Shown: in pieces, positions 1 to 59,943 of the stretch
Layout: every line of letters begins with the position of its first letter
How positions within the stretch are numbered: the stretch's first letter is position 1
Assembly: GCA_964019335.1 (NCBI GenBank)
Contig: OZ025659.1
Span: 744,001-808,000 of the forward strand
From: Diplonema japonicum
Taxonomy: Eukaryota; Protista; Euglenozoa: Diplonemea
DNA length: 64,000 bases
Direction of reading: 5' to 3'
Notes under the pieces: model-generated
What the model was told of the DNA's origin: nothing
The model's input: the letters and a program-made list of their open reading frames with translations, nothing else
Database searches by the model: none
Made by a program: the position numbers and the translations under genes

Positions 1-1304
1 AAGGGAGAAAGGACTCACAGGTTAAAGTGCGAGGGAACAGAATAGAGCTGGGTGGTATTGAGAGCCATGCGCTAGCGGTCGATGGTGTGCAGCAGGCTGT
101 GGCTGTGGTACAGGGCGACAGTAGTGAAGCGAGAATCGTACTCTATGTGACCCCAGAGGTGGAAAAGAAAGTAGTTATGGCCCACCTTGCTGCGTCCCTA
201 CCTCAGTACATGCTCCCGACTCTGGTACACGCAGTGGACTCCCTCCCCTTGAATCCAAGCACAGGCAAGGTTGACCGCTCTGCTCTCCCTGACGTGGAGG
301 ATGCCTACAAAGCTCCCGCTGGGACGTCCCTCCCTGACATCGTGCAGGGTCTTGTCTCAGATCTGCTCGACGCACCTGATTTTCCTTGGGACGCACCACT
401 GCACCCTACATTGGACTCCATCAGCATCATTATCTTATGTGAACGGCTGGAAAAGCAATTCCTAAAGCTCAATATCGGTGACTGGCACGGGATCAGCGAC
501 GGTGTGCCCGTGGTGTTAGCTGCGACATCTATCGATGACCTCTGCGGCAAGCTGTGCGGAGCTGTGCCGGAACTAGCTCAGTATAACAGGCGAGGGACGA
601 AGAAGAAGAAGGCAGGGACCAAAAAGCAAACACCACCCTTGATCGATGCCTGCAAGGCAGGCGATGTAGCGACAGTCACAGAGCTGCTTGCGGGCGGTGA
701 ATGCATAGAGAGTGCCGACAGGTTTGGGTCGACTGCCATACACTACGCAGCTGGGGCGGGGCATCTGGAGCTGTGCATGCTGCTGGTAGCGAAAGGCGCT
801 GATGACAGGGTGCCTGATAAAAAAAGTGGGCGGACCACGCTGCACTGGGCAGCTCGCCAGGGGAAGACCGATGTCTGCAGGTGGCTGGTCGAGGACAGAG
901 AACACGGTGTAGAGGTGAGAGCCAAGGACGACACCACACCTTTGCAACTCGCTGCATGGGGAGGGCACATCGAGACGTGTAAATGGCTAATGACGCAGTC
1001 AGCAAACGTCATGTTTATCAACAAGTGGGGGTGCACTGCTGTGCACTTTGCCTCACTCGCAGGAGAGCTCGACACCTGCAAGTGGCTGCACTCTTTAAGC
1101 CTCGACCTTTCACACGCCAATTACCAAGGTCACAACGCACTTCATAAAGCTGCGTACGGGGGGCACAGGGAGCTGTGTGAATGGCTGCACACCGGACCCC
1201 CTTCAATACCCATCACAGCTGACGTCAGGGACCAGCTCCCTTCAAGACTGGCTGCAAAAGCAGGACACGCAGAGCTTTCAGCCTGGTTATTGTCATTAGA
1301 ATAG
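1..1304 (+). CDS. NRPS-like protein, 5'-truncated by the window: adenylation domain C-terminus + carrier (T/PCP) domain + ankyrin repeats
   Basis: Frame open from the window start. A8-like motif GRKDSQVKVRGNRIELGGIE, A9/A10-like LPQYMLP...LPLNPSTGKVDR, carrier-like LDSI serine, then about 6 ankyrin repeats (TAIHYAA, TTLHWAA, TPLQLAA, TAVHFAS, NALHKAA). Confidence 0.85.
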   Translation, partial: GRKDSQVKVRGNRIELGGIESHALAVDGVQQAVAVVQGDSSEARIVLYVTPEVEKKVVMAHLAASLPQYMLPTLVHAVDSLPLNPSTGKVDRSALPDVEDAYKAPAGTSLPDIVQGLVSDLLDAPDFPWDAPLHPTLDSISIIILCERLEKQFLKLNIGDWHGISDGVPVVLAATSIDDLCGKLCGAVPELAQYNRRGTKKKKAGTKKQTPPLIDACKAGDVATVTELLAGGECIESADRFGSTAIHYAAGAGHLELCMLLVAKGADDRVPDKKSGRTTLHWAARQGKTDVCRWLVEDREHGVEVRAKDDTTPLQLAAWGGHIETCKWLMTQSANVMFINKWGCTAVHFASLAGELDTCKWLHSLSLDLSHANYQGHNALHKAAYGGHRELCEWLHTGPPSIPITADVRDQLPSRLAAKAGHAELSAWLLSLE

Positions 1305-6780: not shown

Positions 6781-6979
6781 GGGTTGTGCCATCTCAGAGG
6801 CTTGGTGGACAGGAACTTGTAGCAAGAATTTTCAATTAAAAAAAGAAGAGATTCTAAGAACAAACTTGTCTGCTTTGTCTTTTTTCACGTTTTCTTTTTT
6901 CCTATTTTTTCGTGGTCGCTCTTCTTACAATTCATCAGGTGACATTAGATAAGATTAAGACCCAAGGGACCAAGCAGCC

Positions 6980-9900
6980 ATGAACAAGGGGGGCGGTGCT
7001 CAACTGGGGACATGTCCCAGAACTGGGCTGCATTACCAGAACCTACCGAAGATGAAGCAGTTCAATGATAACCAATCGTTGCTGATGAAAGTGGTCGAAA
7101 AGAAGTCGAGCAAAGGGAAGCAGCAGAAGAGAGTGCTGGGGCTGCGCTTTGACTACTTGATTTTGAGCGAGCTGACGAACCCCCCAAAGGTGAAGAGATT
7201 CGTTAACGTAGGCCAGGTAAAGGAGGTACATTTCTTCGACTCCCCGAATAAGATAAGGACCACTGTGTTGAAGTTCCGACCCACAATCGACAAGCAGACG
7301 AAGCAGGAGCAGAACGAGGTGGATCTACAGTTCTGCCAGTCCGCCGACCCCAGGAATCCCTCGGACGGCCAGACAGAGTTCGTGGACATCTTGAAGCGGA
7401 TCGCAGAGGTTCGTAAGATCATCATCTCATACCACACAGCGACGTCTCTTGAGGAGCTCAGCAGGGCCAGCGCACTGCAGAAAGATAGAAAAGGCGGGTA
7501 CCAGTCACCTAATTTGATTTTAAAGGAAAGGAGGAAATCCCTCCCCCCCGAGCAAGGCGGTCTTCCTGCATCTCCCATTTCCAAGGTCTTCTCGTCTATG
7601 AGGAGCAGGTCTCAGTCATCCAGTCCAACAGGCAGCCGTACTGGCTCCCTGTCCCCCGCTAGCCCGAAGACCACAAACGGATCGCTACCGCCTCAGTCGC
7701 CCACGTCGCGTACGGCCCGTGGAAAGTCAGCACCTCCCTCCTCCGGTATTGAAGCAGACCCCGACTTCGGCGCGACTGTCGGCTCCGTGAACGGCTCATT
7801 CTCCTCCGTCCCTGGTTCCACCCGCTCCCGTACCGTTTCTATCGGTGTCTGCAATGAGGCTGAGCTCCCCCCAGTCATTGCCCCCCCCAAGGCACTCGCA
7901 TCGTTCAACGAACCGACCTTACGATTCATCAGAGTGGTTGAAAAAAAGAGCGCCAAAGGACAATTCCAAAAGCGTGTCATTGCCCTCACCCACTCAAAGT
8001 TGATCCTTGCAGAACTAAACTGCTCTATTAAGCGCTACTTGTCCTTCGAGTACATCGAGCACATCTACTACCAACCGAGGAGCAAGGTCAACGGGAAGAG
8101 GATCTACCAGTACCTTGTGAAGATCCCCAGCGAGGGGGTCGACATCCTCTTCCAGTTGTCTCATGATGACAGGAACGAGCAGAACGAAGACCAAGACGAG
8201 TTCCAGCGTGTCATCCGTCAGATCTTCACTGCGAGGTCGCTCAACATCCCGTTCGAACTGCTCCCTGAGCAGCCAGATTTGGTGCGAGAAGCACGGCTCC
8301 AGAAGCCGGAAGGATGGGTGAAGCCTGCACGAAAGGCCGCAGAGTCTCCGAACAGCCCGGCCAAGCAGCGTACCAGTTCCTGGTTTGGCGGGATGAGCAG
8401 GCGGAATTCGAAGCCTCCCGAGTCTCCCAAGTCGGTTAACACGAGTCTTCCGAGAGCGCGTCAAAATGCAGAGCACCCCGACTCTATCCCCGCCCCCGTG
8501 CTGGGTCCCGTGCCAACGAAGCAGAACGGAAACACACTTACAGCTAACAAGATACCTGACCAAGAACCTCTTGTCTCCGAGATCTATCAAGGGCTACAGG
8601 ATGATGAACAGGTCTTGTTCCGCGCCTTAGCGAATGTCAACACCAACCAGCAATGGTCTGACGTAAGGCGTCTGTTCAAACAGACGCACCCAGGTTTTCA
8701 CAAAGGCGACCCCATTGAGGCCATGCAGGCAGAGCTCCGAGGGAGAGACTACAAGAAGTGCGTAGATATCTTAAGCGGCAAAGGGATCACAATTGATGGA
8801 CCTTTGCTGAAGCCCGAAGAACGAGCAGCGAGCGCATGTTCTGGAGAGCCCTTGACGAGACTCAATAGCGCATTGAAGAGGCAGAAAAGTGACAAGGAAG
8901 AGGAGGTGTCCCCTCCTGTTTCACCATTTGTGCTGAGACACTCTGCGAACAAAGAAAGTGTCGCATTCTTGATTCAAGAGATACCACCTATCACGGTGCC
9001 TGCTGCCTTGCAGAGCGCATTCAACGACCCAAACACCGACGTGCTGTTCATCCGTGTTGTGGAGAGGGTGAGCAATACTGGGCACCAAGCACCTCGTGTC
9101 TTGGTGGTGACCCCTCACCATGTTATCGTGGCTACATTTATGGGGAGCATCAAGAGGTACATACCTTTGGAAAGCGTCCAGTCCGCTGTCATCACACGCA
9201 GCGCTGTTCGGCAGTATTTGCTGTGCGTGCCAAGCGAGGACAGCGATCTGCACTTCATCACATCGAACGACGAGAGAAACAGCGACGACTCCCAGACTTC
9301 CCTCAGGGACCTGCTTGTGAAACTCTTCCAACTCCGCTCCCTTCCTTTCTCAGTGCTTGAGGTTGCCGTTGAGGAGCTGAAGGAACACAAACGCTTGCCT
9401 GCCAAGAGAAGAGCGTCCATCGCACCTGCTGCTATGGACGGCGTGTGCTCCACGACAGGTCTCCCCACTACACCTTGTCCCGCACACCTAATGGAGTACG
9501 ACCTTCCTAATCTCCTTTATATTCGTATCGTGGAGTGCCGTAATGGGGACGAGCACAAGAAAGCTGTGCTATGCATTAACCACTCTACCCTAAAGTTGGC
9601 TACTGAGGGTGACAGAGTCAGCATCCAGGTGAACTCTATCACAGCTGTCATCACTCAGGTTATCGACCACTCTGGGGTCCCTGTCACCTTGTACTTGATC
9701 AGATCGGAGGGCGCCAAGGACATCCTGATCGCCCAGACTTATGACGAAAGGAACGCCAGTCATAACCAAGACACGCTTGGCGAGCTCCTGAAAGATCTCC
9801 TTGCCTTTTACAACAAGGAATTCGATGAACGTCAGCTGCCCCCCAGCGAAGACATCACGAAGCACGTCGACAGGGTGGCAGGGTCTGCAAAGACCAAGGT

Positions 9901-12900
9901 CGAACCTGAACAATCTGCTCCAGTCGAACAACAGCGCAAGGGGAGTGTGCCCCCCGGGCTTGCGATCATCGCGTCACCGCCAGAATTCCGACAGTTCAAC
10001 GCCTCCAACCTGCTGTACGCTAGAATTGTTGAAAAGATATCAGCAAAGGGCTTGAAGCAGAAGCGTGTTCTGATGCTGACTACTAGCAAGCTGATTGTAG
10101 CTGATGAGAAAGCGGGTGTCATAAAGAGGGAGATTCCTGCTGAGCTCATCACAGACATGTCTCTGCAACTCACGACAGTAAAACACTTCTTCAGCGGGAA
10201 GGAGGAAACCGTGTACACCATCTTGCTGCGCGTACCTAGCGAGGGACTCGACCTGTTGTTCGTGCAGTCGCATGATGCCCGAAACGCAAGTGACGATCAG
10301 GAGGAGTTCCCGAAGATCCTCCGCAGCCTCCTTGCACACCTGGATAAGTCTCTTGTGGAGAGGCACGTAGGGCCTTCGGAGAACATGTCTGAAAGCGCTG
10401 TGCTAAAGAGGGCAGACGGTCATAAAACTCCTGATAAGCATAGGGCCAAGGCTGTTGAGCTAAAGGAAGCAGAATCTGCTGTCGATGACATGTTCGCGAA
10501 CAAGGCACCTGCAGCCCAGCCGGCACCTACCCCAGTTCCTGCCTCAACTCAAGAACCTACCCAGGTCTCTGAAGAGAACACCACCCCTACTACTCCTCCT
10601 CCTATTCCTACACCTGCACCTATTCCTGCCCCTGTTCCTGTTCCTGTTCCTGTTGCTCAACTTGCAACACCTGCTCCTGAGCCTGTTGCTGCCCCTACCA
10701 CTGACTCCCCATCTGCTCACGTACCTGCTACCCCTGCGCCTGTTGTTCCAGTGCAAGAACCTTCAAGAGTGTCTACACCAGTTCAAGAGTCTTCTGCGCC
10801 TGAAACACAGAAAGAAACAGTCCCCATTCACCAAACAGTTTCCATCGAGGCGCAAGAACTAGAGAGGCTGAGGGAAGAGATTCGGGTGCTAAGGTCGCCC
10901 GAAAGGGACATGGAGCACGAGCAGCTGAAGCGGCAGCTGCAGGACGAGGTGGTGAGGTCCGAAGAGCTTAAGACGCTTGTTGAATATTTGCACAAGGAAA
11001 ACAATAGCAACAACGCGTCTCCAAGCAAGCCTGTGCGGGAGATCGACCCACTTGAGATGGAGAGGTTGCAGAATGAGATCCGTACTCTAAAGAAAGACAA
11101 GTCGGATGCAGAAAATAAATTAAGGTTAGCAAGGAACGCAGCGCACCAAGCCGCACTGGCGGAGGCAGATGCACCAATTTCGCCCACTTCATTGCAGCAA
11201 GTACTCCCTTCCAGCATGAGACCCAAGAAAGCACCTGCGGTTGACACAATTGTTGACTACAGCAAGCTGACTGAGGAATTCATCCTCCAGCTAACGCAAG
11301 CTGGCGTCGAACCCCACGAGATGTCTGTGTTCAACGTGCTGTCCATCAGGCAGGGCACCGACCTGCTCGATGCGTCGATTGCTGAGCTTAAGGAGTACTT
11401 GCCTGGCCCGCTGGTAAGACGGGTCTTGCGCATCGCAGGGTACCAGCCTGGGAAGACTGATTTCCACCCTTGCATCTCCATCAATGATGTCCCAGTAAGC
11501 AGCAGAAAGGAGGAAAAGGCGAGGAAGATAGCGCAGGAGAGGCTCCGCATCGTTCAGAGCGAGAACCAATCCTTGAAGGAGACAATCCTTATCCTCAAGG
11601 AGCAGATCAAGGTTCTGAGGGGGCAGCGGGGCATTCCACCTCCTGCAGGTGTTGCAGACTATGAGATGCCCTCCCCCACCACCTTCTCGTCGACCTCCTT
11701 CTCCCCCTCCCCAAGCCGCCCTCGTGAGGAAGAGCACATCGTGCCTGTTCACCACACACCCGTCCCCTCACCAACACCTTCCAAGGCAAAGCGAGACGTT
11801 AGTCAGGACAGAACATCCATTCGTGCTGGAAGCGAAGGAAGCAAGAGGAGTGGAAAGTCTGGAAAGTCAGCAAGGTCTGCCGAGCGAGCCAGGCTGAAGG
11901 CAGAGGCAGCCGCCGCACAGGAGGAGCTGGACAGACGCCTGAAGGAGGAGGAGCTTAAAAAAGCAGCTGCACGACAGCAGGAAGCCATACGCATGGAACA
12001 AATGGCGATCAAGGCGAAGAAAGCACACGAAGAGCTTGAAAAGAAGCGACGAGAAGAGAAGGAAGCGGAAGCCGACAGACAGAAGGCACGTGAGCTAGAG
12101 CTGCAGCAACAAAAACAACGAGAAGTAGAACAGCAGAGGCTGCAAGAAGAGCACGAAGAGGACGCCAGAAAGCTTCACGAGGAGCAACACAGACTGCAAG
12201 AACAGCAAAGACATGCTGACATAGAGCGAGAGAAAAGTACCACGCCTGAAAGGCTCGCCGCAACACCCCTGCTGCCAACGCTCATGTCGTCAACATTTGT
12301 ATGTAGCCACACCACGAACCACAAGCCACAGGACGAGAGCGATGTTCCTGAACCCGAACCCAAGCCTCCTGCGGAGCCTGTGAAAGAGCTGCTTCAGGAG
12401 GTTGTGCAGGAAGCTGTGCGGGAGAATGCAGAAGAGCATGTACACACTCCTGGAGATGCTGTGCAGCAGGAGATGCCCAAGGCACCGGAGGAAGATATTC
12501 AAGCTGCCATGCAGCAGGAGATGCCTAAGGTACCGGAGCCAGCACCTGAGGAGACTGTGCAATCGGAGCTGGAAAAGCCTGAAGAGCCTGTTGTGGAAGA
12601 AGCAGTCCCAACCACAGCAGCCACAGAGCCAGTGCGGGAGCTCGAGCAACAAGAAGTGGTGTCGGAAGCTTTGCCTGAGCGAAAAGAGCTCGAAAAGGTA
12701 TCCGATCCTGAACCCGAACTCGAACCTGTGCCCGTGGAAGAGGAGACAACAATGGCGGCGGTGGTGCCTGAGGAGCCCCCTGTTGAAATGGAAGAACCTG
12801 CGGTGCCCAAGGAGGATGTACCAGAGGAGCCTGTTCATGTGGCGGAAGTGCAAAACAAAGCGAAGACAGAGGTGCCGCCTATCAAGGTATTGCTTGTGGA

Positions 12901-44755: not shown

Positions 44756-46487
44756 ATGGCGTTCGCACTGCCTGTTATGAGCGAGAACCCCGGATGGGGT
44801 CCACCGAAGACGGATGACGGTCTCAGCTTTGACATCCCTTACCAGCACTTCTTCAAGGGAGACAGGATCTCCAAGATCGCCGACTGGATCAGTGACAACA
44901 GGGGTAGGGGCAGGGGTGGCCGTTCCAGGTACTGGAATGGCGAGGGTGTCGATGAAGAGGAGAAGAACTGGACTACGGCTGACTACACGAAGAACACAAG
45001 GAACATGAGGCCGTGGTACCGTGGAGGAAAGGGCCGTGGTAGGGGCAACAACATGCAGAACAGGGGTGGCCCCAGGAGGACTGGTGGCAGAGGTCAGGGT
45101 GCTGTTGGCAAGCCTAAGAAGAAGGAGCTCAGGGACATGGGTTTCAACAGGGCCAGGAGGGACCTGAACCTCAAGGCTTCTACTGAGGTGAAGCAATCCT
45201 GGGTGATGAAGACCGCCATTAACATTTCTGACCTCAGCAAGTGCTTGACAATCCCCGACCACCCCACTCCCCTGCCTACTGACCTTGCGGTATGCTTATA
45301 AGAATGAATGTAACACTACTATACAGTGCCAAGGCGAAGCGCTCTTCTATAATGATAAGTTGGAGAAAATGGCGGCAGCCAAGTCCCCTCTCCCTATTGT
45401 TGAGCAGAACAGGGCCATGGAGGAGGGCCCTTTGATCAACGCCGAGGCAACCAGGACCTTCCTTAGGGACAAGCAGAAGATGGATGGTAAGATCAAGGTG
45501 GTTGCTTCCGATAAGGCGCTCGCCACGCTAATGGCCGCACCGAAGGCCACGATCGCCTGGGACATACGCATCGAGCGTGTTGGCGATATCTACTTCATTG
45601 ACTGGGATCCTGAGTCCGACGGCAAGAAGTGGACTGTCAACGAGACCTCAACGGAACCGCCTCCTCTTGAAGCCACAGATGAGAACAAGCTCAACTCGCA
45701 GCCGCACCTTATGAACGAGCTCAGCAAGATGAGCATGAACTTCTCCCAGCAGGTTCTTGACAGAAAGAAGGGTACCGTAAAGGGTAAGAACTATGTTCAG
45801 GCACCTGTGCCGGAGCACCTTGAAGGGAAGGACCAGCCTGCCAGTTTGGTGTACAAGTGGAGAACGTGGAAGATCAAGACCGCCTTCCCCAAGGACCCGG
45901 ACACGCACATCTCGTTGATTTCCAGGACGCACGTCGACGGGTTCGTCACCAACGCAAAGTCGTTCCGTGCCTTTACCACTCTCGACCCCACTGGCAACAC
46001 CTACAAGACCCTCCCCAACCAAGAGGGTGCTATTACCGCCGCTGAGATCAAGAACAACTGCTGCAGGCTGGTGAAGCAGGTCGCCGTGTCTATGCTCGCA
46101 GGTGCCGACCACATGAAGCTCGGTTTCTGTACCAGGAAGAAGGCCTCCGACAACACCTCCCATCAGATCGTGCACATCGCCTCGCACGAACCCAAGGTGT
46201 TCGCGAAGTCCATCAACTTGACCCAGAGGGGCTTCTGGAACGTCCTCATCAAGATCTTGCAAGAGCTTTTTACCTGCAAGAGCACTGAAACAAAGCAGAG
46301 GTTCGTTCTCATGAAAGACCCTACCAAGCCCCAGCTCAAGGTATGTTGGTAATCATATTTTCATGTCACGCAGATTTATGACACCACTGGCGATGTTAGC
46401 GACGATGAGTCCAGCGAGGATGACGAGGATGAGGAATCGGAGAGTGACTCGGACTCGGACTCCGACTCTTCCTCTTCGTCGGACTAG
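44756..46487 (+). CDS. EIF3D: Translation initiation factor eIF3 subunit d; introns 45290-45326 and 46341-46373
   Basis: NPGWGP, PYQHFFKGDRISKIADW, TVNETS, EIKNN, LAGADHMKLGF and LMKDPTKP motifs; acidic tail. Confidence 0.92.
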
Positions 46488-46988
46488 AAGTTAAATTCCC
46501 GATCATCCCTCCCCTTTGCTTTTGGGTTTTTTTAATGTCATGCTTTTTATCAACACGTAGTATTTATTTTAAACCCCCCCCCCATTTCTCTTTCCCCTCT
46601 TTTTGTCCACCCCCGCCCAACCCACCATCCCCATTTCCACTGGTTCGCACCCGCCGACGGGACTCTTTTTAAATCAACTCATTTGCTTTCAGTACGGCAG
46701 CTTAAAGCAAAAGTGTAGCGAGCCGGCTATTGGTTTTCAAGAGATTATTTTCCCCTGAGGTTAGATAAGTAAACAAATATGTTTGGCTTGCCTCGTGAGC
46801 TGATTTAATTGGGCCTAGACTTGGCGCTGTGATGCTGCTTTGAGTCCAGGTTCCGAAGGGGTCTTGCGAATGAGGCATGCTATGTTTTTAAACATTTTTA
46901 CAACTCAGGTTTGCTTGTGTTTTTTTCTTATTCTTTTCCGTATCTTTTCACAACGTCACCTCCTTACGTTTAAATCATTCGCAGCACA

Positions 46989-48264
46989 ATGAACAAAGCA
47001 ACATGCACGGGGTGCGGCAAGGACGCACCAACTATGCAATGCCCTCAGTGCAGGGAGCTCGGATTGCCACCGGCATACTTCTGCGCCCAGGACTGCTTCA
47101 AGAAGAGCTGGGGCACACACAAAAAAGAACACAAAAAAGCACCGGAGGCCAGCATCCCCACTATGAGTGCTGAGCAGATGTTGTTATTCGACTTCAGGGG
47201 TGATTTGAGGCCCGGGAAGATTACACCGATGAGAAAGGTGCCAAAAACCATTCCCAGGCCTGACTACGCCGACCACCCGCAGGGACACAGTCTGTCAGAA
47301 CAGAAGGACACTAGCCAGAAGGCGGTCCGTATTAGGGGCGAGGATCTCGTGGGGCTCAAGAAGGTTTGCAAGCTTGCAAGAGAGGTGCTGGACATTGCAT
47401 GTGCCGCCGTGAAGCCCGGTATCACTGGTGATGAGATCGATAAGATCGTACACGACGCGTGTGTGGCCAGGGAGTCTTACCCTTCACCGTTGAACTACTT
47501 TGGGTTCCCTAAATCAGTTTGCACCAGGTATGTTTTTTAATGGTACAGCATGTCATGCAGCATCAATGAAATCATCTGCCATGGGATCCCCGATTCGCGA
47601 CCCCTCGAAGAGGGCGACATTGTGAACATCGATGTGACCCTCTTCCACGGTATGACATGTGTCGTGTGTTACTTCTTACGCAGGCGGTTTCCATGGTGAT
47701 CTCAACGAGACGGTGTTTGTGGGCAAACCCAGCGCAGAGTCGAAGAAACTGGTCATCGCAGCTTACGAGTGTCTGTGGGAGGGTATTAACAGCGTCAAAC
47801 CTGGTGCTTTCTACCGAAACGTGGGCACCACGATCGACATCAGGGCCAAGCAGGACAACCTCAGTGTCGTGAAAACATACTGTGGACACGGCATCCACAA
47901 GCTCTTCCACACTGCCCCAAATGTACCGCATTACGCAAAAAACAAGGCAGTTGGTGTGATGGAAACTGGCCATGCCTTCACCATCGAGCCCATGATCAAC
48001 GTGGGTGAGTACGGCGATGTGCTGTGGCCCGACAACTGGACCAGCTCGACCACTGACGGGAAGAGGTCTGCGCAGTTCGAGGAGACTTTGTACGTTGTTG
48101 ACGATGGTATGTTTTGACATCTGCAAGCTTATAACTTCACAGGTGTCGAAGTCCTCACCATGCGTGAAAACCCAAAGCCACACTTCGCCCGCCAGCTTGA
48201 TGAATGGGGTGTTCCTTATGAAATCAAGGTGGGGCCAGGCGGCTCTGACCCGAGGTGGCAGTAA
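46989..48264 (+). CDS. METAP1: Methionine aminopeptidase 1 with N-terminal zinc finger; introns 47528-47560, 47650-47683, 48107-48142
   Basis: Cxx[14 protein letters not shown]; [40 protein letters not shown] and SAQFE motifs. Confidence 0.95.
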
Positions 48265-48355
48265 ATCTCAGTTTTTCTTTTTTTTTCTTAGTGTATCAGT
48301 TATAGTCTTTTTCATTGATTCTTGCATTTATTTTCAAGAGGTCACAGGATGGAGA

Positions 48356-49293
48356 ATGGGAGGGTGCCTTAGTAGGATCCTGATAAGAGATGAGCGCCTG
48401 GGTCGTGCGGTGTGGTTGTTTCGCGAGGGTGGGGTGATGCTGTCGCCTTACTGGTGGGCTGCGGCTCTTACCTTTCAGCTTCCTTTGATTACTACAGTTG
48501 TATTCTGCAGGTGCACTCCTGCAAGGCACCACAAAGTGGTGGTGGCGGGGTCTGCTACGCTGCTGTTGGCTGTAGGATATTTTCAGGTAATGGTAAGCAC
48601 CTCTGATCCTGGAATCATACCTCGAAGTGATGGGGAGGAGGAGGGGCAGAACGAACGCGTTGGGGAGCGCGTGATGGGTCTTATCGTGCAGCCCCGTGAC
48701 CAGGTTGTGCAGACAGGTAAAGGCCCGCTTGTCTATAGATGGTGTCGTACGTGCAAGATCCATCGCCCTCCGCGTGCGTCGCACTGTGACACGCTCGATT
48801 GCTGTGTTGCTGACTATGATCACTTCTGCCCAGTGGTAGGTTCCTGCATTGCGCAACGGACACTGAGGTACTTCGTCGGGTTCCTCTCTTCTTGCGCGCT
48901 TCTTGCTTCGTGGACTGGGGGGTGCACCTATTACCTCATGAAGACATCGTGCGGACCTTCAGGACCTTACTATTCTGCCTTCAGAGAAAAAGAAAGAATG
49001 TGCGCCGCAGCTTCGATTGGGTGTGGTGCGGGCTTCTGGACAGGCGTCATGTCGATTTTTTACTTTTAGTATGCCACACACCAATCACACACATCTCAGC
49101 TTGATATGCACTGAGCACACGAAACGTGAGGACGTGCGCGGGCTGCCGAACCCCTATGCCGAAAAGGAGGTATGCGTCTGGTAAAACTACAGCAACACAG
49201 TGGACGTTGACGGGTAGCTTACGCGCCATACGATCAGCACTTTGTGGTTTCTTGCCTTCGAGCAAGGTGCAATTCACAGCAGATTCCTCATAG
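48356..49293 (+). CDS. DHHC-family palmitoyltransferase (DHFC variant); introns 49069-49099 and 49170-49200
   Basis: SDPG, CRTCKIHRPPRASHC and DHFCPVVGSCI motifs; spliced NPY motif. Confidence 0.8.
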
Positions 49294-49386
49294 ACCTGAC
49301 ACGCAATGCGGTTTAGTTTCTTTCGATCGTTACTTCTACCGCTCGATTCTACTTGGCGATGTATACAGGTGACATAACATTGCAAA

Positions 49387-51012
49387 ATGGAACATTGGAA
49401 ACTAGGATTTGAAGATAAAGGGACGTATATTGAACCAATGGCTCTCCCCACAGAAAACGGACATGTCAATAAGGAAAAGTGGGTTGCAGACAGGCTGGCG
49501 GCCAGGGAGAGTATACCGCACAATTCAAATCACTATGCAGTGCTTGAAACGATCGAAGGCGTGTCACCAGCACTTGTGGTAAATAAGTTGGTTGGTGTGT
49601 ACTTGGAGCTGATCAGCAGCAAGCCCACGTTGTTTCACAGGAAGCAGCAGCTGTGCATAGCACAAATTAGCAACCTGTTCGGATGCGCCCGCCTTCCCTG
49701 TGATACTAGTGATATAGACAACATACACATCTTCCACGCTTCTCAGCATATAACCGTACTATGCAACGGGTCGCTCTTTGAAGTTCAGGTAATCCAAGAC
49801 GGTAAGCCTGTTCCCACGGAGCAACTTCAACAAGCACTTGAGAAAGCCGAGACGATTGCAGAGGAGAACAAGACTACCGGTCTTGGAGAAGGGGGCGAGC
49901 TGGCCTACTTCACGATGCTTCCGCGTGGTGATTGGAGAGCACTACGCACAGAGCTCCAGAAAGACATCAGAAATCGAACGGTACTCAAGTGTGTGGAGTC
50001 CTCGCTATTCGTGCTAGGGTTAGACGCTGTGCCCGAGGGGCATGATTGGTCTAGCACATGCTATGCCGGTGATGGAGTGTCGCGCTGGTACGATCAGTGC
50101 TTCAATGTCTCGGTGCACGATGGTTCTGTGGCTTTGATCCTAGAGGAGTCCTGCTGCGATAGTGTTGCTCTCTCATGGCTGGCGAACAAATTGTATTCTC
50201 TGTTGAAACCGCTACAGGAAATGTCTGAAGTAGTTAAAGGGATGGAAATAGCAGATCAACAAGTGCAATCTCAGGAAGATAAAATAGCACAAACAGCGAA
50301 AGAAGGCGTACTGCGCCACCACTCAGGCTCATTGAAAGATCCCATGCTTAGTCGCTATCCGCCATTAGCATTACACAAGGCGTTGTGCACACGGAGTATC
50401 CGGGCTATCGAGACGCCCTCATTCGCAAGCCTGCTGTACAGACTGGACATCGACTACGACGCATTGGTGATGGTTAGCGGTGCTCTTGCTTTCTACAGGT
50501 GCACCAAAACCACTCCCAATGCAGCGCATACCGTTGGCCTTCACTCATTTGCTGGGGGGAGGAACATGGTCCGCCAGCCAGTGGCCACCAGTGAATGCGT
50601 CGCGTTTCTCAAGGCGATTTGCAAGGATGACCCAGAAAGGATCCACACCAAGCATCAAGTTAAGAAAGTGCTACTCAATGCCCTCGATGCAGCTCGAGAG
50701 GATAAACAAAAAGCCGCCCAGGGTTCCTTACTCAACTGCAAGGACGGCCATGCCCTGCACTACTCGGCAGAGCGGATTTGGAAGCCCAACCCAAAGCCGC
50801 GAAAGACATACAACATCTTCGGTAATCCCAGCCCTAATTCCGACCTGCATTTCACCTACCACATCTGCTGCCACCCGAACACTTTTTGTTTTACTTGGGA
50901 ACGGCCAGACTTTGCTGTGTTCCCTGAGAAGTTTAAGGAAGTATGTGACAAAGACACAAAAGAAATCACACGCCACAGTGCCTCATCGAATGCGTTGGCA
51001 TGCTGTAGTTGA
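49387..51012 (+). CDS. Choline/carnitine O-acyltransferase family, divergent
   Basis: LFGCARLP, HITVLCNG, VESSLFVLGLD and RWYD motifs. The catalytic EHxxxD motif reads EESCCD. Confidence 0.7.
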   Translation: MEHWKLGFEDKGTYIEPMALPTENGHVNKEKWVADRLAARESIPHNSNHYAVLETIEGVSPALVVNKLVGVYLELISSKPTLFHRKQQLCIAQISNLFGCARLPCDTSDIDNIHIFHASQHITVLCNGSLFEVQVIQDGKPVPTEQLQQALEKAETIAEENKTTGLGEGGELAYFTMLPRGDWRALRTELQKDIRNRTVLKCVESSLFVLGLDAVPEGHDWSSTCYAGDGVSRWYDQCFNVSVHDGSVALILEESCCDSVALSWLANKLYSLLKPLQEMSEVVKGMEIADQQVQSQEDKIAQTAKEGVLRHHSGSLKDPMLSRYPPLALHKALCTRSIRAIETPSFASLLYRLDIDYDALVMVSGALAFYRCTKTTPNAAHTVGLHSFAGGRNMVRQPVATSECVAFLKAICKDDPERIHTKHQVKKVLLNALDAAREDKQKAAQGSLLNCKDGHALHYSAERIWKPNPKPRKTYNIFGNPSPNSDLHFTYHICCHPNTFCFTWERPDFAVFPEKFKEVCDKDTKEITRHSASSNALACCS

Positions 51013-51068
51013 CACTCCTATGTATATTTACAAGCTAGTGTACTGTGATGATTCACACTCCTACAGAA

Positions 51069-54000
51069 ATGGGGGAAGGCGAAGGGGGTGCAAGCTGGGA
51101 GGGGGCAACAATGAGCGACACAGGGAGTAGCTGTGCGGAGGTTGCAGTAAATCCTTTGAGCGAACTAAGGCGAGAGTTGGTCAATGGCCCTGTGTTCCAT
51201 CCGTTGGAAGAGCTTGAGCAGGAAACTGTTGCTGAAAAGTTAGTATTTGACAGAATGCATGTGGATGACATCAAGAGACTCGGGGACGAGCGGGCGAAAG
51301 CAAGGCAAGATGAAGAAATGCAACAACTGCTGGCCCATCGTGATAAGTTAGAAGCCATCAGAAGGTCAAAGGAAGCCAGCTTGTTACGTGCAAGAGACGA
51401 AAACAAGAAGAGACTGGAAAAAGAACAGCAACGTTTCCGTGATGCTGTTATCCGACGCAACGTAGTGAGGCACAATGTGGACGCCTACTTTCAGCAGTCG
51501 CATGAGAAGTTGAAGACATTTGTCAAAACAAGGAAGTCGCAAGTTACTCACAAATACGGTGAAATGACGACAAGCGCAGCGCAGCAATTTGAGTTAGACA
51601 AAATAGACTGGGACTCTATTCCACAGCAGGTAGAAGTACACATCAGTTCAGTGCGAGGTCTGAAAGACAAGATACCGAAAGGCGACTATGTTATGCTTGT
51701 TTCAAAGTACTCACAATTAGGAGGAGAACCATTCAAATGGAGTCTGCGTGACCCTAACGGTTCTGCACCCCCTGCTTGTCCATTCCATGAACACGGGGAC
51801 CCTAGAAAAGCGGACTGCGAGGTGTGCCGGGGCTGGGTCGGTTCTACGACTCCCGTCAAGCATAGGAGCCGCTACCACGACGTCGACTTGCCACTCGACA
51901 CTTCCATCTACACCTTTTTCCCCCCAAGGAAGACGATCAAGCCGTACGCAGCTTTTATCTTCGAGCTCGTGAGGCTTCCTGATAAACCATCAGAACTTCC
52001 TCAAACTGTAGGTTGGGGTGCATTTCCAGTTATCAACGGTAGATTTTCGGTGATCAAGGGTAAGTTCAAAACACCCCTCTTGAGAGGTGGTGTGGACAGC
52101 AGTGTTGAGCACTACACTAAGGTCGAAGACATTGTTGCAGAAGACATTGAGAACTGGCTAGGGAACATCTACTTTGATGTCGTGCCGCACCCCAGGGAAT
52201 GCGACGGGAAAGGGGAGTTCGATATCGAAGCCACCACGAATGCTAAAAGGCTTGGGGTTGGTGAGTATGAAGAAAGTGAAGTCCCAATCAACAGGGGAGA
52301 AACCATGGTTGTAGGTGGCATGAAAACCCTTGGTCGGAACCTGGCTTCCATGGCGTACATGGGAAAGTCCTTCAAGAAGGCCGAGATGACTCCTAAGAGG
52401 CGCAGGTCATCATCCACCGATGTCGGACTTGCAAAGAACACAAGCTGGAGCTTTGGATTAGGTGCCACAAGGACACTGTCTATGAACTCGATGCCGATCG
52501 TGAGCAGGCGAAGGAAGTCTTCGATAGCGTTCGTGGATGAAACAGGCGACTCTGACGACGACGACGAAGATGACGATGACAAGGGCGTTGCGGGTTTTGG
52601 GAGACTGCGCTCGAAGCACATGTCAATGCACAAACTCCTCGAGAAACCGACAAGTGACGACAACAGCGCAGATGACGTGGACAGTAACGATGCCAGTAGT
52701 GGCGGTGACTCCGACAACGAAATGCTTGCCTGCGGAGATGTGACGGACCAGGAACAGGGCGAGCTCCTGTTTGATTTGATAGACCAAGACAACGATGGAG
52801 TGCTCTCGAGGGACGAGCTGCATATGTACCTCGTGAACTATCCTGAAGTCAAGGAAAAGCTGAGTATCTCGAACCTTGCTGAGTTCTTTGACAAACTGGA
52901 CGCTGACTCAGACGGCAGGATCAGCAAGAGCGAGTTTGCTGCTATGTGGGCCGCCATGGCTTCAGGAGCAGCAGACATGTTCGGCTTCCGCGATAAAGAA
53001 AATGTGCAGGAAGATTCTTATGAACTAGTTTCGAAGAAGAAGACGCTTGGCAAAAGCTTCAGGCAAGTGGCAGAGACACTAGGTACTGGGACAGGAACAT
53101 CGACAGCAAAGGGGAAGCTGTTCAATGCGTTGGATAACATTGCTAAGAACAAAAAAAGCAAGAGACGAGTATTGGTGGAAAGAGGTGAAAAATGGGGCCA
53201 GTATACCACTGAGATTAATGACACTTCATTCTTGTCGGGTGAGTCTGCGTCGTGGTCGCTGCAGCTCCAGTATTGCTGGAGGGGCATCCTCGATGAGCTG
53301 AACCTTAAGAATCCAGGAGAGCTGAAATTTTGGTTCGTAATTCTTGTCTTCCTTATAGCGCTCTACAGCCAGTTGTATGTCCATGGAATTGGGCAGTACT
53401 GTGCAGCCTTTGTGTTGGGGCTACCTACTGCCAACATCGACCCCAAGTGGTACGGGCTGATCGTTGAGTACGACAGTAACCACACGTCTGCTTTCCAAGA
53501 GCTTTTTATTGTACTCATTTCTATGACGATGAACATAGGTGTCATAGCAATGCTAATCGCCTTCAGCACTGGTATCAAAGTTGCTACAGGTGGGTTACCA
53601 CAGCAGACGTCGAAATTCGTGTACTGCTTGTCGCTGGCTTACCTGGTATTCCCTTTCCTTCATCTGGGGATCGACCTGTGGGGCGGCTACTCCGGCAATC
53701 ACTCGGACATTATGCGGCTGATAGACTTCTACAACGCCAACCAGTACGAGTCCTTCTTTGGGATATCCACGTTTGCAACACTCTACTTGAATATCTCTGC
53801 GGTGGTGGGAGTGATGAACTACTTGTACACCATGCGCGTGCACTTGAATGGTATTCTGCAGGACTGCTTCTGGAGGATTAACGTTGTCAATGAGAGGAAC
53901 TTTTTTGTCCCACTGGACTTAGAAGTATCAAAGAAGGAGCTGGAGTACGTGTGCAGAAAGTCAGAGATGTGGAGAGGAAGGAACGGTGAACGCCGAAAGA

Positions 54001-54882: not shown

Positions 54883-54894
54883 GGTTCAATTTCA
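54883..54894 (+). promoter_or_regulatory. B-box-like upstream element of U1 (GGTTCAATTTCA), at -121
   Basis: Matches the Pol III B-box consensus and sits at the same distance as the element upstream of U2. Confidence 0.65.
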
Positions 54895-55003
54895 CGTTTC
54901 TTTGGGTTTCCTTTGTTGTAATCGAAAATGTGTGCATAACCTGTGGCAAAGATCTTGGGTTGGGATTTCTGATAAGATAGCCTTCCTTGTTTCTTGGGAA
55001 GGT

Positions 55004-55161
55004 ACATACCTGATTGGTGTCTGGCCTGATCAAGTAGGGTGCCGACATATCAACGGTCCTTGCATTGCACTTCGCTTGGAACGTTGGTAGGGGCTGGGCT
55101 TGCCTGGCTTCCACAATGAAATTTTTGGTAGCGGTGGTGCTGCGCTTGCGCAAACCCACCT
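55004..55161 (+). ncRNA. U1: U1 snRNA with variant 5' arm ACAUACCUG
   Basis: SL I loop GATCAAGTAG (55028-55037), SL II loop ATTGCAC (55064-55070), SL III, Sm site AATTTTTGG (55120-55128), SL IV, then a T-tract. Confidence 0.92.
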
Positions 55162-56969: not shown

Positions 56970-57160
56970 ATACCTTCTCGGCCTTTTGGCTAAGATCAAG
57001 TGTAGTATCTGTTCTTATCAGCTTAATATCTGATACAGCACCTCGTGTGCTGCGATATTAAACTAATTTGTCGTTGGGGGTGGCAGGTAGCTCAGGGCAA
57101 CCTGAGTCTGTCCACAGGTGTTGCCCTGGAGCTGCACAACATCCAGGAGTGGCACACCCT
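56970..57160 (+). ncRNA. U2: U2 snRNA
   Basis: ATACCTTCTCGGCCTTTTGGCTAAGATCAAGTGTAGTATCTGTTCTTATCAGCTTAATATCTGATA, 3' stem-loops, then a T-tract. Confidence 0.97.
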
Positions 57161-59943
57161 ACTCTTCTTTTTTAAAATCCACTAACTCAAACGCATAATT
57201 CACGTTGTTAACTTGGTAAAACCGCACTTCGCATTTCCGCAATAGGTACACAGAGTGCGTCCTGTCCTCGAAATCAACCAAAGAAGAAGGACCGTCTGGA
57301 CTTTTTTAGGGCGAACCGACGGTCGGGCAAGGCCGCCGTTCATGCGCTAGCTGAAGAACACCGAGCGGTCTGGAGGACAAATTCTCGCACACAAAACTAG
57401 CGACGGCCGGGGTCGTCGAAGCGGAGAGGGAGTGGACTCCAGAAACCATGATACGAGTATGCAGGCACGTACCGAGGAGCCTAAAACCGCGGAGGAGCTC
57501 GGGGATCACATGCGTTTTGTCCGGTTCGCCCTCATCCTCGACTTCGACAACACGTGGATCATGGCCAAGCTTGACTTGGAAGGCTGGAAGGCGAAGAGGG
57601 ACGTCGATAGACGACAACAGTACACGCGGCCTGGAAATAGGAGAGCCTTAAAGGATCACTACTCCATGGCGACTGACTGGCTGTTCTTCTCGACGCTGCA
57701 ATGGCACAACATCAGTTACTCCCGCCGTTTACCCGCGCTTGTGTTGTTCAAGCAACTTCTCAAGCTGCTTCTGAGCAGTTCATACTTTTTTAAATCCAGC
57801 GATGCATTGAGAGCACCCATGCATCCAAGGGGAAAATTCAGTCCTGGATGGTAGGCTCGAATCCAGACCCAGTGGTCTTTTCACTTTCGGAGGGCACAAC
57901 ACCGACCCCCCCCTTTTGGAAGGATAGAGAAAATCAGCCGGGATGTGTAGGCAGCATCCTGAAACACCCAGCTTTGGGGGGGCAAGCGACGATGTGGAAC
58001 TGGGTCGTTCCTGTGTGGGGATCGGAGGCGCAGTGTGCTGTGCTGATGTTCTGTCCTGGTTAGTCCGGTGTGCTCAGTGCAGGCTTGTCGCAAGACTCGT
58101 CGACACAGAGCTTGAAGAGGGACGAACCGGGCCAGGCTGGCCATCAGAGCAGCTCCTAGTTCCCGCAACGGACAGTTCCAGGATAGCAGAACTGAGCAGT
58201 GCCTGTGTCTCTGCCACTCAGACTACCTGAACCGCATCGCCCATCTTTTTTGCTTGCTTGCTTTTTTATATTGGTGAGAGTGGTTCAGCTACCGCCGCGC
58301 ATTTCAGTTCCGCGAAGTTGCGAATGTTGGGGACGCTGCCGAGAAGCGAGAAGTCCGAGATCACAGCGCCGTGGCATGGACAAGCTTCCCCAAAGACATT
58401 CCGGAGGCAGAAGTCTGCATCACGGGACAAGCGGGCCCTAGTCTCTAGAAAGACTCCAGCTGCAGCCGAGCCCCAGCAACAACCAAGGAGGGCGCTCGAC
58501 GACAACGGAGAGGTACAGATCTCAACAACGGCCACTACCAAGCAGTTGCTAGGAAGATCATGCACACCTCCTCCGGACTGACGGTGGGCGTCGTACTTTC
58601 GTGCAAAGGAATTTTGCTACTTTGTTCTTTTTGGTCTTCGTTATGTCTATCCTGATCGGACGTTTTCCCTGTGGTTTCTGGGCAAAAACAGCAGGGACAG
58701 CCACTTTGCTGTGCTCTCTCGTGTTTGGCTTTGGGTGCCTCGTTCCACAACAATTAAAACTGTGGAACAAATAGCTAACATCACCAATACGATACGGTGC
58801 ACCGTGCATGTAGTTACTGATGTCTTTAGCCCGTACAAAAAGAAAATTCTTGAGTTTCCAGATTTTACAGGTGCATATGAGCTCAGGAGCACACCGGAGG
58901 GTGTATTTGCTACGTGCGCATCCACGAGCAAGAAAGAACTAAAGTACATCATCAAACTCGATGCAGACAGGGCAGAGAAAAGGCCCCCAGTCTGTGAATC
59001 TCGTGATGAGTATGAGGACGTTCCTGATAGCCTTCCAGGACTTGAAAAACGAGAAAGAATAGTACGGGTTTGCGGAAGTAACCAAATTACAAAAATACTC
59101 GACACCCCCCATGACAAGCCCAAAGCACCAAGTACACCTACGAATGAGCCTCTTAAAACCCCCCAAAATGCAGTAGAAGGCCTAATAGTATGAAAAAGAA
59201 ACGAGATCGCCCACCCAGCAGCAGTGCATCTCAGCCGCAGAAGATTAGGAAATGAAGGTTTCCACTTCCAACATCATTTCAGCCACCTTCTAGTAGTGAG
59301 TTCCGCTATTTCTTGCTATTGAAAGCATACTCTCTGACTTTACCAAAACCACTAAAACCCGATTTTGACCCTAAAACTGAATTTTTCATAGGTCAAAAGC
59401 ACTCTCGAGCGATTTCTGACCCGGGTTCTTTCCTCATATGGGCCGGGGAATATAGAGAATCTTTTTTTAAAGGGGGTGGCATGCCCAAAGATGCAACGAA
59501 AGTGTCAATTGGCCTCATTTTTTTTGGGGGGGGTTTGAAATCAACCCATATTAAAATCAGTCCAAGTCACGAAGTACATGTGGAGTCGCCCTCACAGAAG
59601 AGCCTTTTATGCACATCTTACTTGAGCAGACGTCAGACATGATATATCGACCAAATGATAATAATACAAAGATCCTTTCTTCATACGGAATTAAGGGCAC
59701 TAGTAAACAAGGGTGTTACAAGAAGTGTGCGGCTTTGCAGGAGGAAAGGTGGGGAGCTTGAGGCTGTACATTAGTGAGTACGCGACGTGTGGTTGTCTGC
59801 TGGTCAGAGGATGGGACATCCGTATCAGTAATCCATCTTTCGATAGGTCTTGAAATCGAAGGGTGACATGCAGATTACGCCTACGCTGGCGGTTTGTGTT
59901 ACGGTACAATAGTAATAGGCCAATTTTTGCTCGGTTCAGTTGT

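Follow-up and report, generated by a model that had tools for sequence, protein, structure and literature searches.

A close described counterpart of the gene reported here is the U1 snRNA of Paradiplonema (Diplonema) papillatum. According to Valach et al. (2023; section 4 of Additional file 1, BMC Biol), the CAUACCU motif of this RNA is reverse complementary to the donor aGGTaTG; its departure from the near-universal ACUUACCU they left unmentioned. P. papillatum shares with the present organism, Diplonema japonicum, the CAUACCU motif, the cloverleaf U1 and membership of the family Diplonemidae, and differs in being another species, with a genome of about 280 Mb and four U1 copies that differ from one another by 1-3 nt. 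For D. japonicum itself, Thakur et al. (2025; RNA) documented 10,131 introns whose median length is 41 nt, with an A-rich 3' region, and gave the donor as (G)/GTATG in this species as well as in L. lanifica and R. humris. The same study identified diplonemid U1 genes in genomic sequence and presents an alignment of them (their Fig. 4A); the text describes these U1s as classical or well conserved and passes over position 5 without comment. Three U1 copies were reported there from a fragmented draft, as against the six loci described below. A diplonemid U1 with adenine at position 5 (A5) that matches GUAUG donors has thus been documented before within the clade and falls into a rare class, and the complementarity is no discovery of ours because Valach et al. 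(2023) stated it for D. papillatum. The literature on diplonemid U1 that we searched does not, however, frame this arm as a departure from the universal one. Searching the literature for words of the ACAUACCU type yielded noise from siRNAs and primers, and a Giardia match was set aside because it concerned the U1A loop rather than the U1 arm.

Outside the diplonemids, the relation between the U1 arm and the donor takes several forms. The kinetoplastids, the sister group within Euglenozoa, also have a non-standard 5' arm (AACUCACCUGCA; Kostygov et al. 2024), but it lacks A5, position 6 being C and position 5 U, and their U1 is reduced to two hairpins and serves introns in three genes only. Saccharomycotina, Giardia and Trichomonas resemble the diplonemids in their GUAUGU-type donors with +4U, yet retain ACUUAC in U1, which leaves +4 mismatched (Roy & Bowser 2022); the contrast with yeast drawn in an earlier sequence-only reading of this DNA is therefore right. 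According to the same authors, the ACAUAC of Physarum was the sole earlier compensatory case, to which they added Entamoeba and Mastigamoeba. In their summary, Physarum polycephalum has the identical ACAUAC change together with GUAUGU donors; it differs in that standard and modified U1 reportedly coexist there, whereas no intact standard copy is present here, and because Physarum is an amoebozoan its change is of independent origin. The arm of U1 has likewise shifted along with the donor consensus in Entamoeba (ACAAAC with GUUUGU) and Mastigamoeba (ACGUAC), but other bases are involved, and Entamoeba is intron-poor where diplonemids have about 10^4 introns.

Identity of the U1 gene

The DNA analysed here, referred to as the window, is a stretch of 64,000 nucleotides (contig 12:744001-808000 of the assembly). 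A cmscan search of the whole window located three clustered RNA genes, for U1, U2 and SRP RNA (Table 1). The U1 match covers the full RF00003 model (1-166) on the plus strand with 80.6 bits and an E value of 2.4e-18, and so passes the gathering score of the family (69.5). The sequence-only reading had described a complete U1 with a 70K loop, a U1A loop, an Sm site and stem-loop IV at 55004-55161, and all of these parts are indeed present, stem-loop IV being paired 3' of the Sm site up to 55161 and followed by a T-rich tail. The end of the span was correctly placed, while the true start lies two bases earlier, at 55002. In the recognition arm, which aligns against the RF00003 consensus AUACUUACCUG, U1 position 5 is A (window 55006), against the U found there in nearly all eukaryotes; both the direct reading and the model alignment bear out the altered base that had been noticed from the letters.

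Table 1 Coordinates of features in the window and of plant-type U1 genes on metagenome contigs (window positions unless a contig is named)
Feature	Position	Strand	Basis
Conserved upstream block, 119 nt, presumed promoter	54883..55001	+	alignment of five intact U1 copies
U1 snRNA gene, 160 nt	55002..55161	+	RF00003 match, full model
5' splice-site recognition arm GUACAUACCUG	55002..55012	+	direct reading and RF00003 alignment
Stem-loop I loop GAUCAAGUAG, U1-70K binding motif	55028..55037	+	aligned with Rfam consensus GAUCAaGAAG
Stem-loop II loop AUUGCAC, U1A binding motif	55064..55070	+	aligned with Rfam consensus CAUUGCACU
Sm site AAUUUUUGG	55120..55128	+	direct reading and RF00003 alignment
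U2	56970-57162		cmscan
SRP RNA	57937-58241		cmscan
Intron, 37 nt, gcg|GTATGC...CAG	45290..45326	+	joint in X1 and X2
Intron, 33 nt, aag|GTATGT...CAG	46341..46373	+	RNA joint
Intron, 33 nt, cag|GTATGT...CAG, nine uninterrupted pairs with U1	47528..47560	+	RNA joint
Intron, 34 nt, acg|GTATGA...CAG	47650..47683	+	RNA joint
Intron, 36 nt, atg|GTATGT...CAG	48107..48142	+	RNA joint
Intron, 31 nt, tta|GTATGC...CAG	49069..49099	+	joint in X1 only
Intron, 31 nt, gag|GTATGC...CAG	49170..49200	+	joint in X1 only
Intron, 38 nt, gaa|GTATGT...CAG	50941..50978	+	joint in X1 only
Plant-type U1 genes	L032:8812-8971 and 10191-10348		metagenome scan
Plant-type U1 genes	L034:7593-7753 and 6944-7100		metagenome scan
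Plant-type U1 genes	L036:2-164 and 956-1121		metagenome scan
Further contigs with plant-type U1	L033, L035, L038, L041, L048, L049		metagenome scan

U1 copies in the genome

When the entire assembly (62.5 Mb, 132 contigs) was searched with Rfam, six U1 loci came up, five of them intact and one a deletion derivative. The window U1 is identical or nearly identical to the four other intact copies. All five carry A5 within the arm ACAUACCUG and read ACATACCTG, position 1 being G in all but one copy, which has A, and the 119-nt upstream block precedes each of them in the alignment. A second, identical U1 (G000:C12:809296-809455) lies on the same strand 1.3 kb past the window end, 10,294 bp downstream of the window U1; this spacing suggests that the U1/U2/SRP RNA cluster may belong to a duplication of about 10 kb.

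The sixth locus, on contig 81 (L006; G000:C81:426362-426521), reads GATCTTACCTG and is the sole genomic copy with a standard-looking arm (CUUACCUG / GAUCUUACCUG). Its GAUCUUACCUG is what could be cited for a view of the window gene as a pseudogene or silent variant, with a standard ACUUAC arm on the working U1. This copy, however, has suffered a 51-nt deletion, equivalent to window positions 54956-55006, which takes U1 nucleotides 1-5 and, from the conserved upstream block, its proximal 46 nt, and joins upstream sequence to U1 position 6-7. The CUUACCUG at the joint, and with it the standard-looking arm, is an accident of the junction. A whole-genome pattern search for any other standard-arm U1 (CTTACCTG...GATCANG) gave only the contig 81 locus and five unrelated matches, the Rfam search produced only the six loci, and the sister species has CAUACCU as well. 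A major U1 with ACUUAC accordingly finds no genomic support, the only copy of that kind being the deletion derivative, and we regard a silent window gene as exceedingly improbable. The window U1 is one of five equivalent, presumably active genes for the organism's only U1 type, an RNA of the usual four-stem build; indirect support for their activity comes from the near identity of the five copies, the upstream block that they share and the T-rich tail.

Relatives with the same arm

JGI metagenome contigs were scanned with an exact pattern that combined the A5 arm, the 70K loop and the U1A loop. The scan gave 18 loci, 13 of which are bona fide U1 genes and five chance matches. Three marine contigs (L042, L043 and L046; 56-60% GC) hold diplonemid-like U1 genes within clusters of snRNA, SRP and tRNA genes. 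They show about 93% identity to the window U1, with about 11 differences, and keep the arm ACAUACCUG unchanged. Across the five intact genomic copies and the three marine genes, arm positions 3-11 are invariant, and an arm that stays constant while some 11 other positions drift argues for constraint. L042 also bears a diplonemid SL RNA gene, whose leader is that of the present genome. The comparison with related species finds the same arm in all three marine contigs and, as reported by Valach et al. (2023), in D. papillatum. The density of small-RNA genes on L046 is striking in itself: a diplonemid-like U1, SRP RNA, U4, 5S rRNA, tRNA-Sec and about 17 tRNA genes are packed into 3 kb (L046:1-2985).

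The same scan brought up U1 genes of a different origin. Several AT-rich metagenome contigs (29-40% GC) contain plant-type U1 genes with an A5 arm, UUACAUACCUG (Table 1), preceded by a plant snRNA promoter with a USE of the TCCCACAT(CG) / RTCCCACATCG type at about -70 and a TATA box. On three contig types an A5-arm and a standard-arm U1 are neighbours, separated by 0.5-1.3 kb. The A5 copies of one lineage, drawn from four contig types, group in a clade of their own (99/97 support), apart from the neighbouring standard copies, and this separation suggests a conserved paralogue. No description of a plant-type A5 U1 beside a standard U1 was found in the searchable literature.

Introns and their pairing with U1

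ORF-bridging heuristics for recovering introns from the DNA alone were tried and rejected; about 4% of GT sites bridge open reading frames, with no enrichment of any pentamer, and because this failed to discriminate we turned to splice joints in RNA. The RNA test covered 6 kb of the window (45200-51199) and used two runs of RNA-derived contigs (X1 and X2, organisms coded A and B) and two DNA runs (X3 and X4, organism C). The DNA runs match this region at 100%, whereas the RNA-derived contigs are 95-99% identical to it and differ by 1-5%, mostly by transitions, from which we conclude that the RNA came from a near relative, a sibling species or another strain and not from the isolate that was assembled. 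The RNA contigs carry loose spliced-leader tails (...CTACAGTTTCTGTACTTTATT), the 3' part of the leader, at 46984 and 49368, which identifies them as cDNA from trans-spliced mRNA.

Eight splice joints are present in the RNA runs and in neither DNA run, and all eight intron positions are common to the assembly and the divergent source of the RNA. The introns are GT..AG introns of 31-38 nt (Table 1), and every one of them begins with GTATG; for eight of the 22 introns that it had reconstructed (20 GTATG, one GTATT and one GTATA), this agrees with the sequence-only claim that introns of this locus begin GTAT. Position -1 is G in 6/8, positions +1 to +5 are invariant GUAUG, and position +6 varies (four U, three C, one A). 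In the window, GTATG accounts for 107 of about 7,600 GT-initiated pentamers (about 1.4%), so its occurrence at eight donors out of eight is far beyond chance. Raw counts gave no overall enrichment of GTATG in the window; the signal is confined to real introns. The bias towards +4U that had been expected for the genome as a whole is thus seen in all RNA-confirmed introns of the region and, genome-wide, in the (G)/GTATG logo of Thakur et al. (2025).

In the standard register, U1 C8, A7, U6, A5 and C4 would bind positions +1 to +5 of the intron. A5 gives the arm full Watson-Crick complementarity to G|GUAUG(U), the donor that hardly varies among the tiny introns of this organism, and with each of the eight donors 5-9 Watson-Crick pairs follow one another without a gap. 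The full complementarity to CAG/GUAUGU that had been claimed is realized at the donor at 47528, where all nine bases pair contiguously. Were the standard U placed at position 5, the helix would be interrupted at +4 for all eight donors. The A5:+4U pair would do away with a mismatch that is tolerated in budding yeast, in Giardia and in Trichomonas. In other eukaryotes U1 positions 5 and 6 are pseudouridine, and it might be imagined that A5 is likewise modified after transcription, by deamination or methylation, so that the mature arm pairs otherwise. Direct support for such a modification is absent, the unmodified A already fits the donors perfectly, and no data point to nuclear snRNA editing here, which makes this a very unlikely account of the arm.

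The spliced leader was considered separately. In mRNA it is 39 nt long and of euglenozoan type, and the positions 46984 and 49368 (+) are SL trans-splice acceptor sites of two plus-strand genes. This leader, the tiny GTATG introns, which resemble those reported for D. japonicum (Thakur et al. 2025), and the near-identical U1 beside an SL RNA gene on L042 all agree with a diplonemid source of the DNA. A GUAUG donor in the SL RNA was rejected, since nowhere in the genome does GTATG follow an SL exon. Likely SL RNA genes (L014 and L019; G000:C2:150557 and C4:650072) have the sequence SL exon|GTACCCAATCTGATCC, and tandem pairs of such candidates lie at G000:C59:512397/512743 and C15:779062/779414. 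As the candidate genes read SL|GTACCC, the SL donor would be GUACCC and not GUAUG; on the marine contig L042 it is GUAUAG. Most genomic matches to the leader followed by GT are SL-headed repeats. One repeat family (L050-L059, e.g. G000:C7:48927 and C15:625757) begins with a complete spliced leader, continues with GTATCGACCGTGCC and has T-tracts in front.

U6 and METTL16

In budding yeast the +4U is read mainly by U6, and in the yeasts +4U has been proposed to follow the loss of U6 m6A. Inspection of both components in the present genome gave a standard U6 and a METTL16 homologue. The ACAGAGA box is canonical in all six genomic U6 loci, in which GAUACAGAGAAGAUUAGC / UACAGAGAA are kept. An intron-free open reading frame of 362 aa on contig 1 (L031:1183-2271; G000:C1:1171958-1172722) belongs to the METTL16/RlmF family, with 133.7 bits to PF05971; its best solved relatives are U6 A43 N6-methyltransferases (E 5e-36). 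Loss of U6 m6A was consequently rejected as a simple explanation of the +4U. In light of what is known of U6 m6A, the presence of the homologue together with a standard U6 box would speak against a simple yeast-like route to +4U.

These results bear on the main alternative, in which the +4U is set by U6 (ACAGAGA with +4 to +6) or by other factors and A5 is a secondary, nearly neutral change. The U6 ACAGAGA could read +4U by itself, so that the change in U1 may not be what selects +4U; the box is indeed unchanged in all six U6 copies, and since several GUAUGU lineages cope with a standard U1 (Roy & Bowser 2022), pairing of U1 at +4 is not generally required for donors of this type. Against a neutral A5 stand its fixation in the intact copies and its retention in relatives that differ at about 11 positions, which points to constraint, and the METTL16-family enzyme, whose presence means that the yeast route without U6 m6A does not obviously apply. 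We consider this alternative improbable, although not so remote as the two discussed above. It touches causation, with U1 following a +4U set elsewhere, and leaves the identity of the U1 gene unaffected.

Discussion

Taken from the gene, its copies and the donors, the reading that we prefer is that the window U1 is very probably the working U1 of this organism and recognizes donors of the form G|GUAUG by an unbroken helix in which A5 pairs with +4U. Since A5 is fixed in every intact copy and common to the relatives, a co-adaptation of U1 and donors at the level of the lineage is suggested. The sequence-only reading had proposed a compensatory co-evolution of U1 and 5' splice site, and both of its molecular sides stand, with A5 in 5/5 intact copies and GUAUG in 8/8 donors; the history itself, including the order of the changes, we infer, as we do the expression of the RNA with this 5' end, its state of modification and the importance of pairing at +4.

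A more far-reaching proposal, which we put forward only tentatively and hold to be rather doubtful, would combine three elements: a complete replacement of U1, a +4U that is read twice, by U1 A5 and then by U6 ACAGAGA, and a strong donor that defines the introns. If true, a complete switch in a genome with about ten thousand introns would contradict the need for massive intron loss beforehand. The +4U would be read in Watson-Crick fashion by U1 A5 and later by an unchanged U6 ACAGAGA in the presence of a METTL16 homologue, and a very strong donor would let introns of 31-40 nt with weak branch and tract signals work.

Changes in the donor-reading arm of U1 are among the rarest events in the evolution of the spliceosome, and most GUAUGU lineages lack a matching change in U1 (Roy & Bowser 2022). 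The diplonemid case has so far gone unremarked, in a supplement (Valach et al. 2023) and in an alignment figure (Thakur et al. 2025). Diplonemids offer a clean case, in that all intact copies are changed and the lineage contains introns, and it bears on how an snRNA and a splice signal co-evolve while thousands of introns depend on both.
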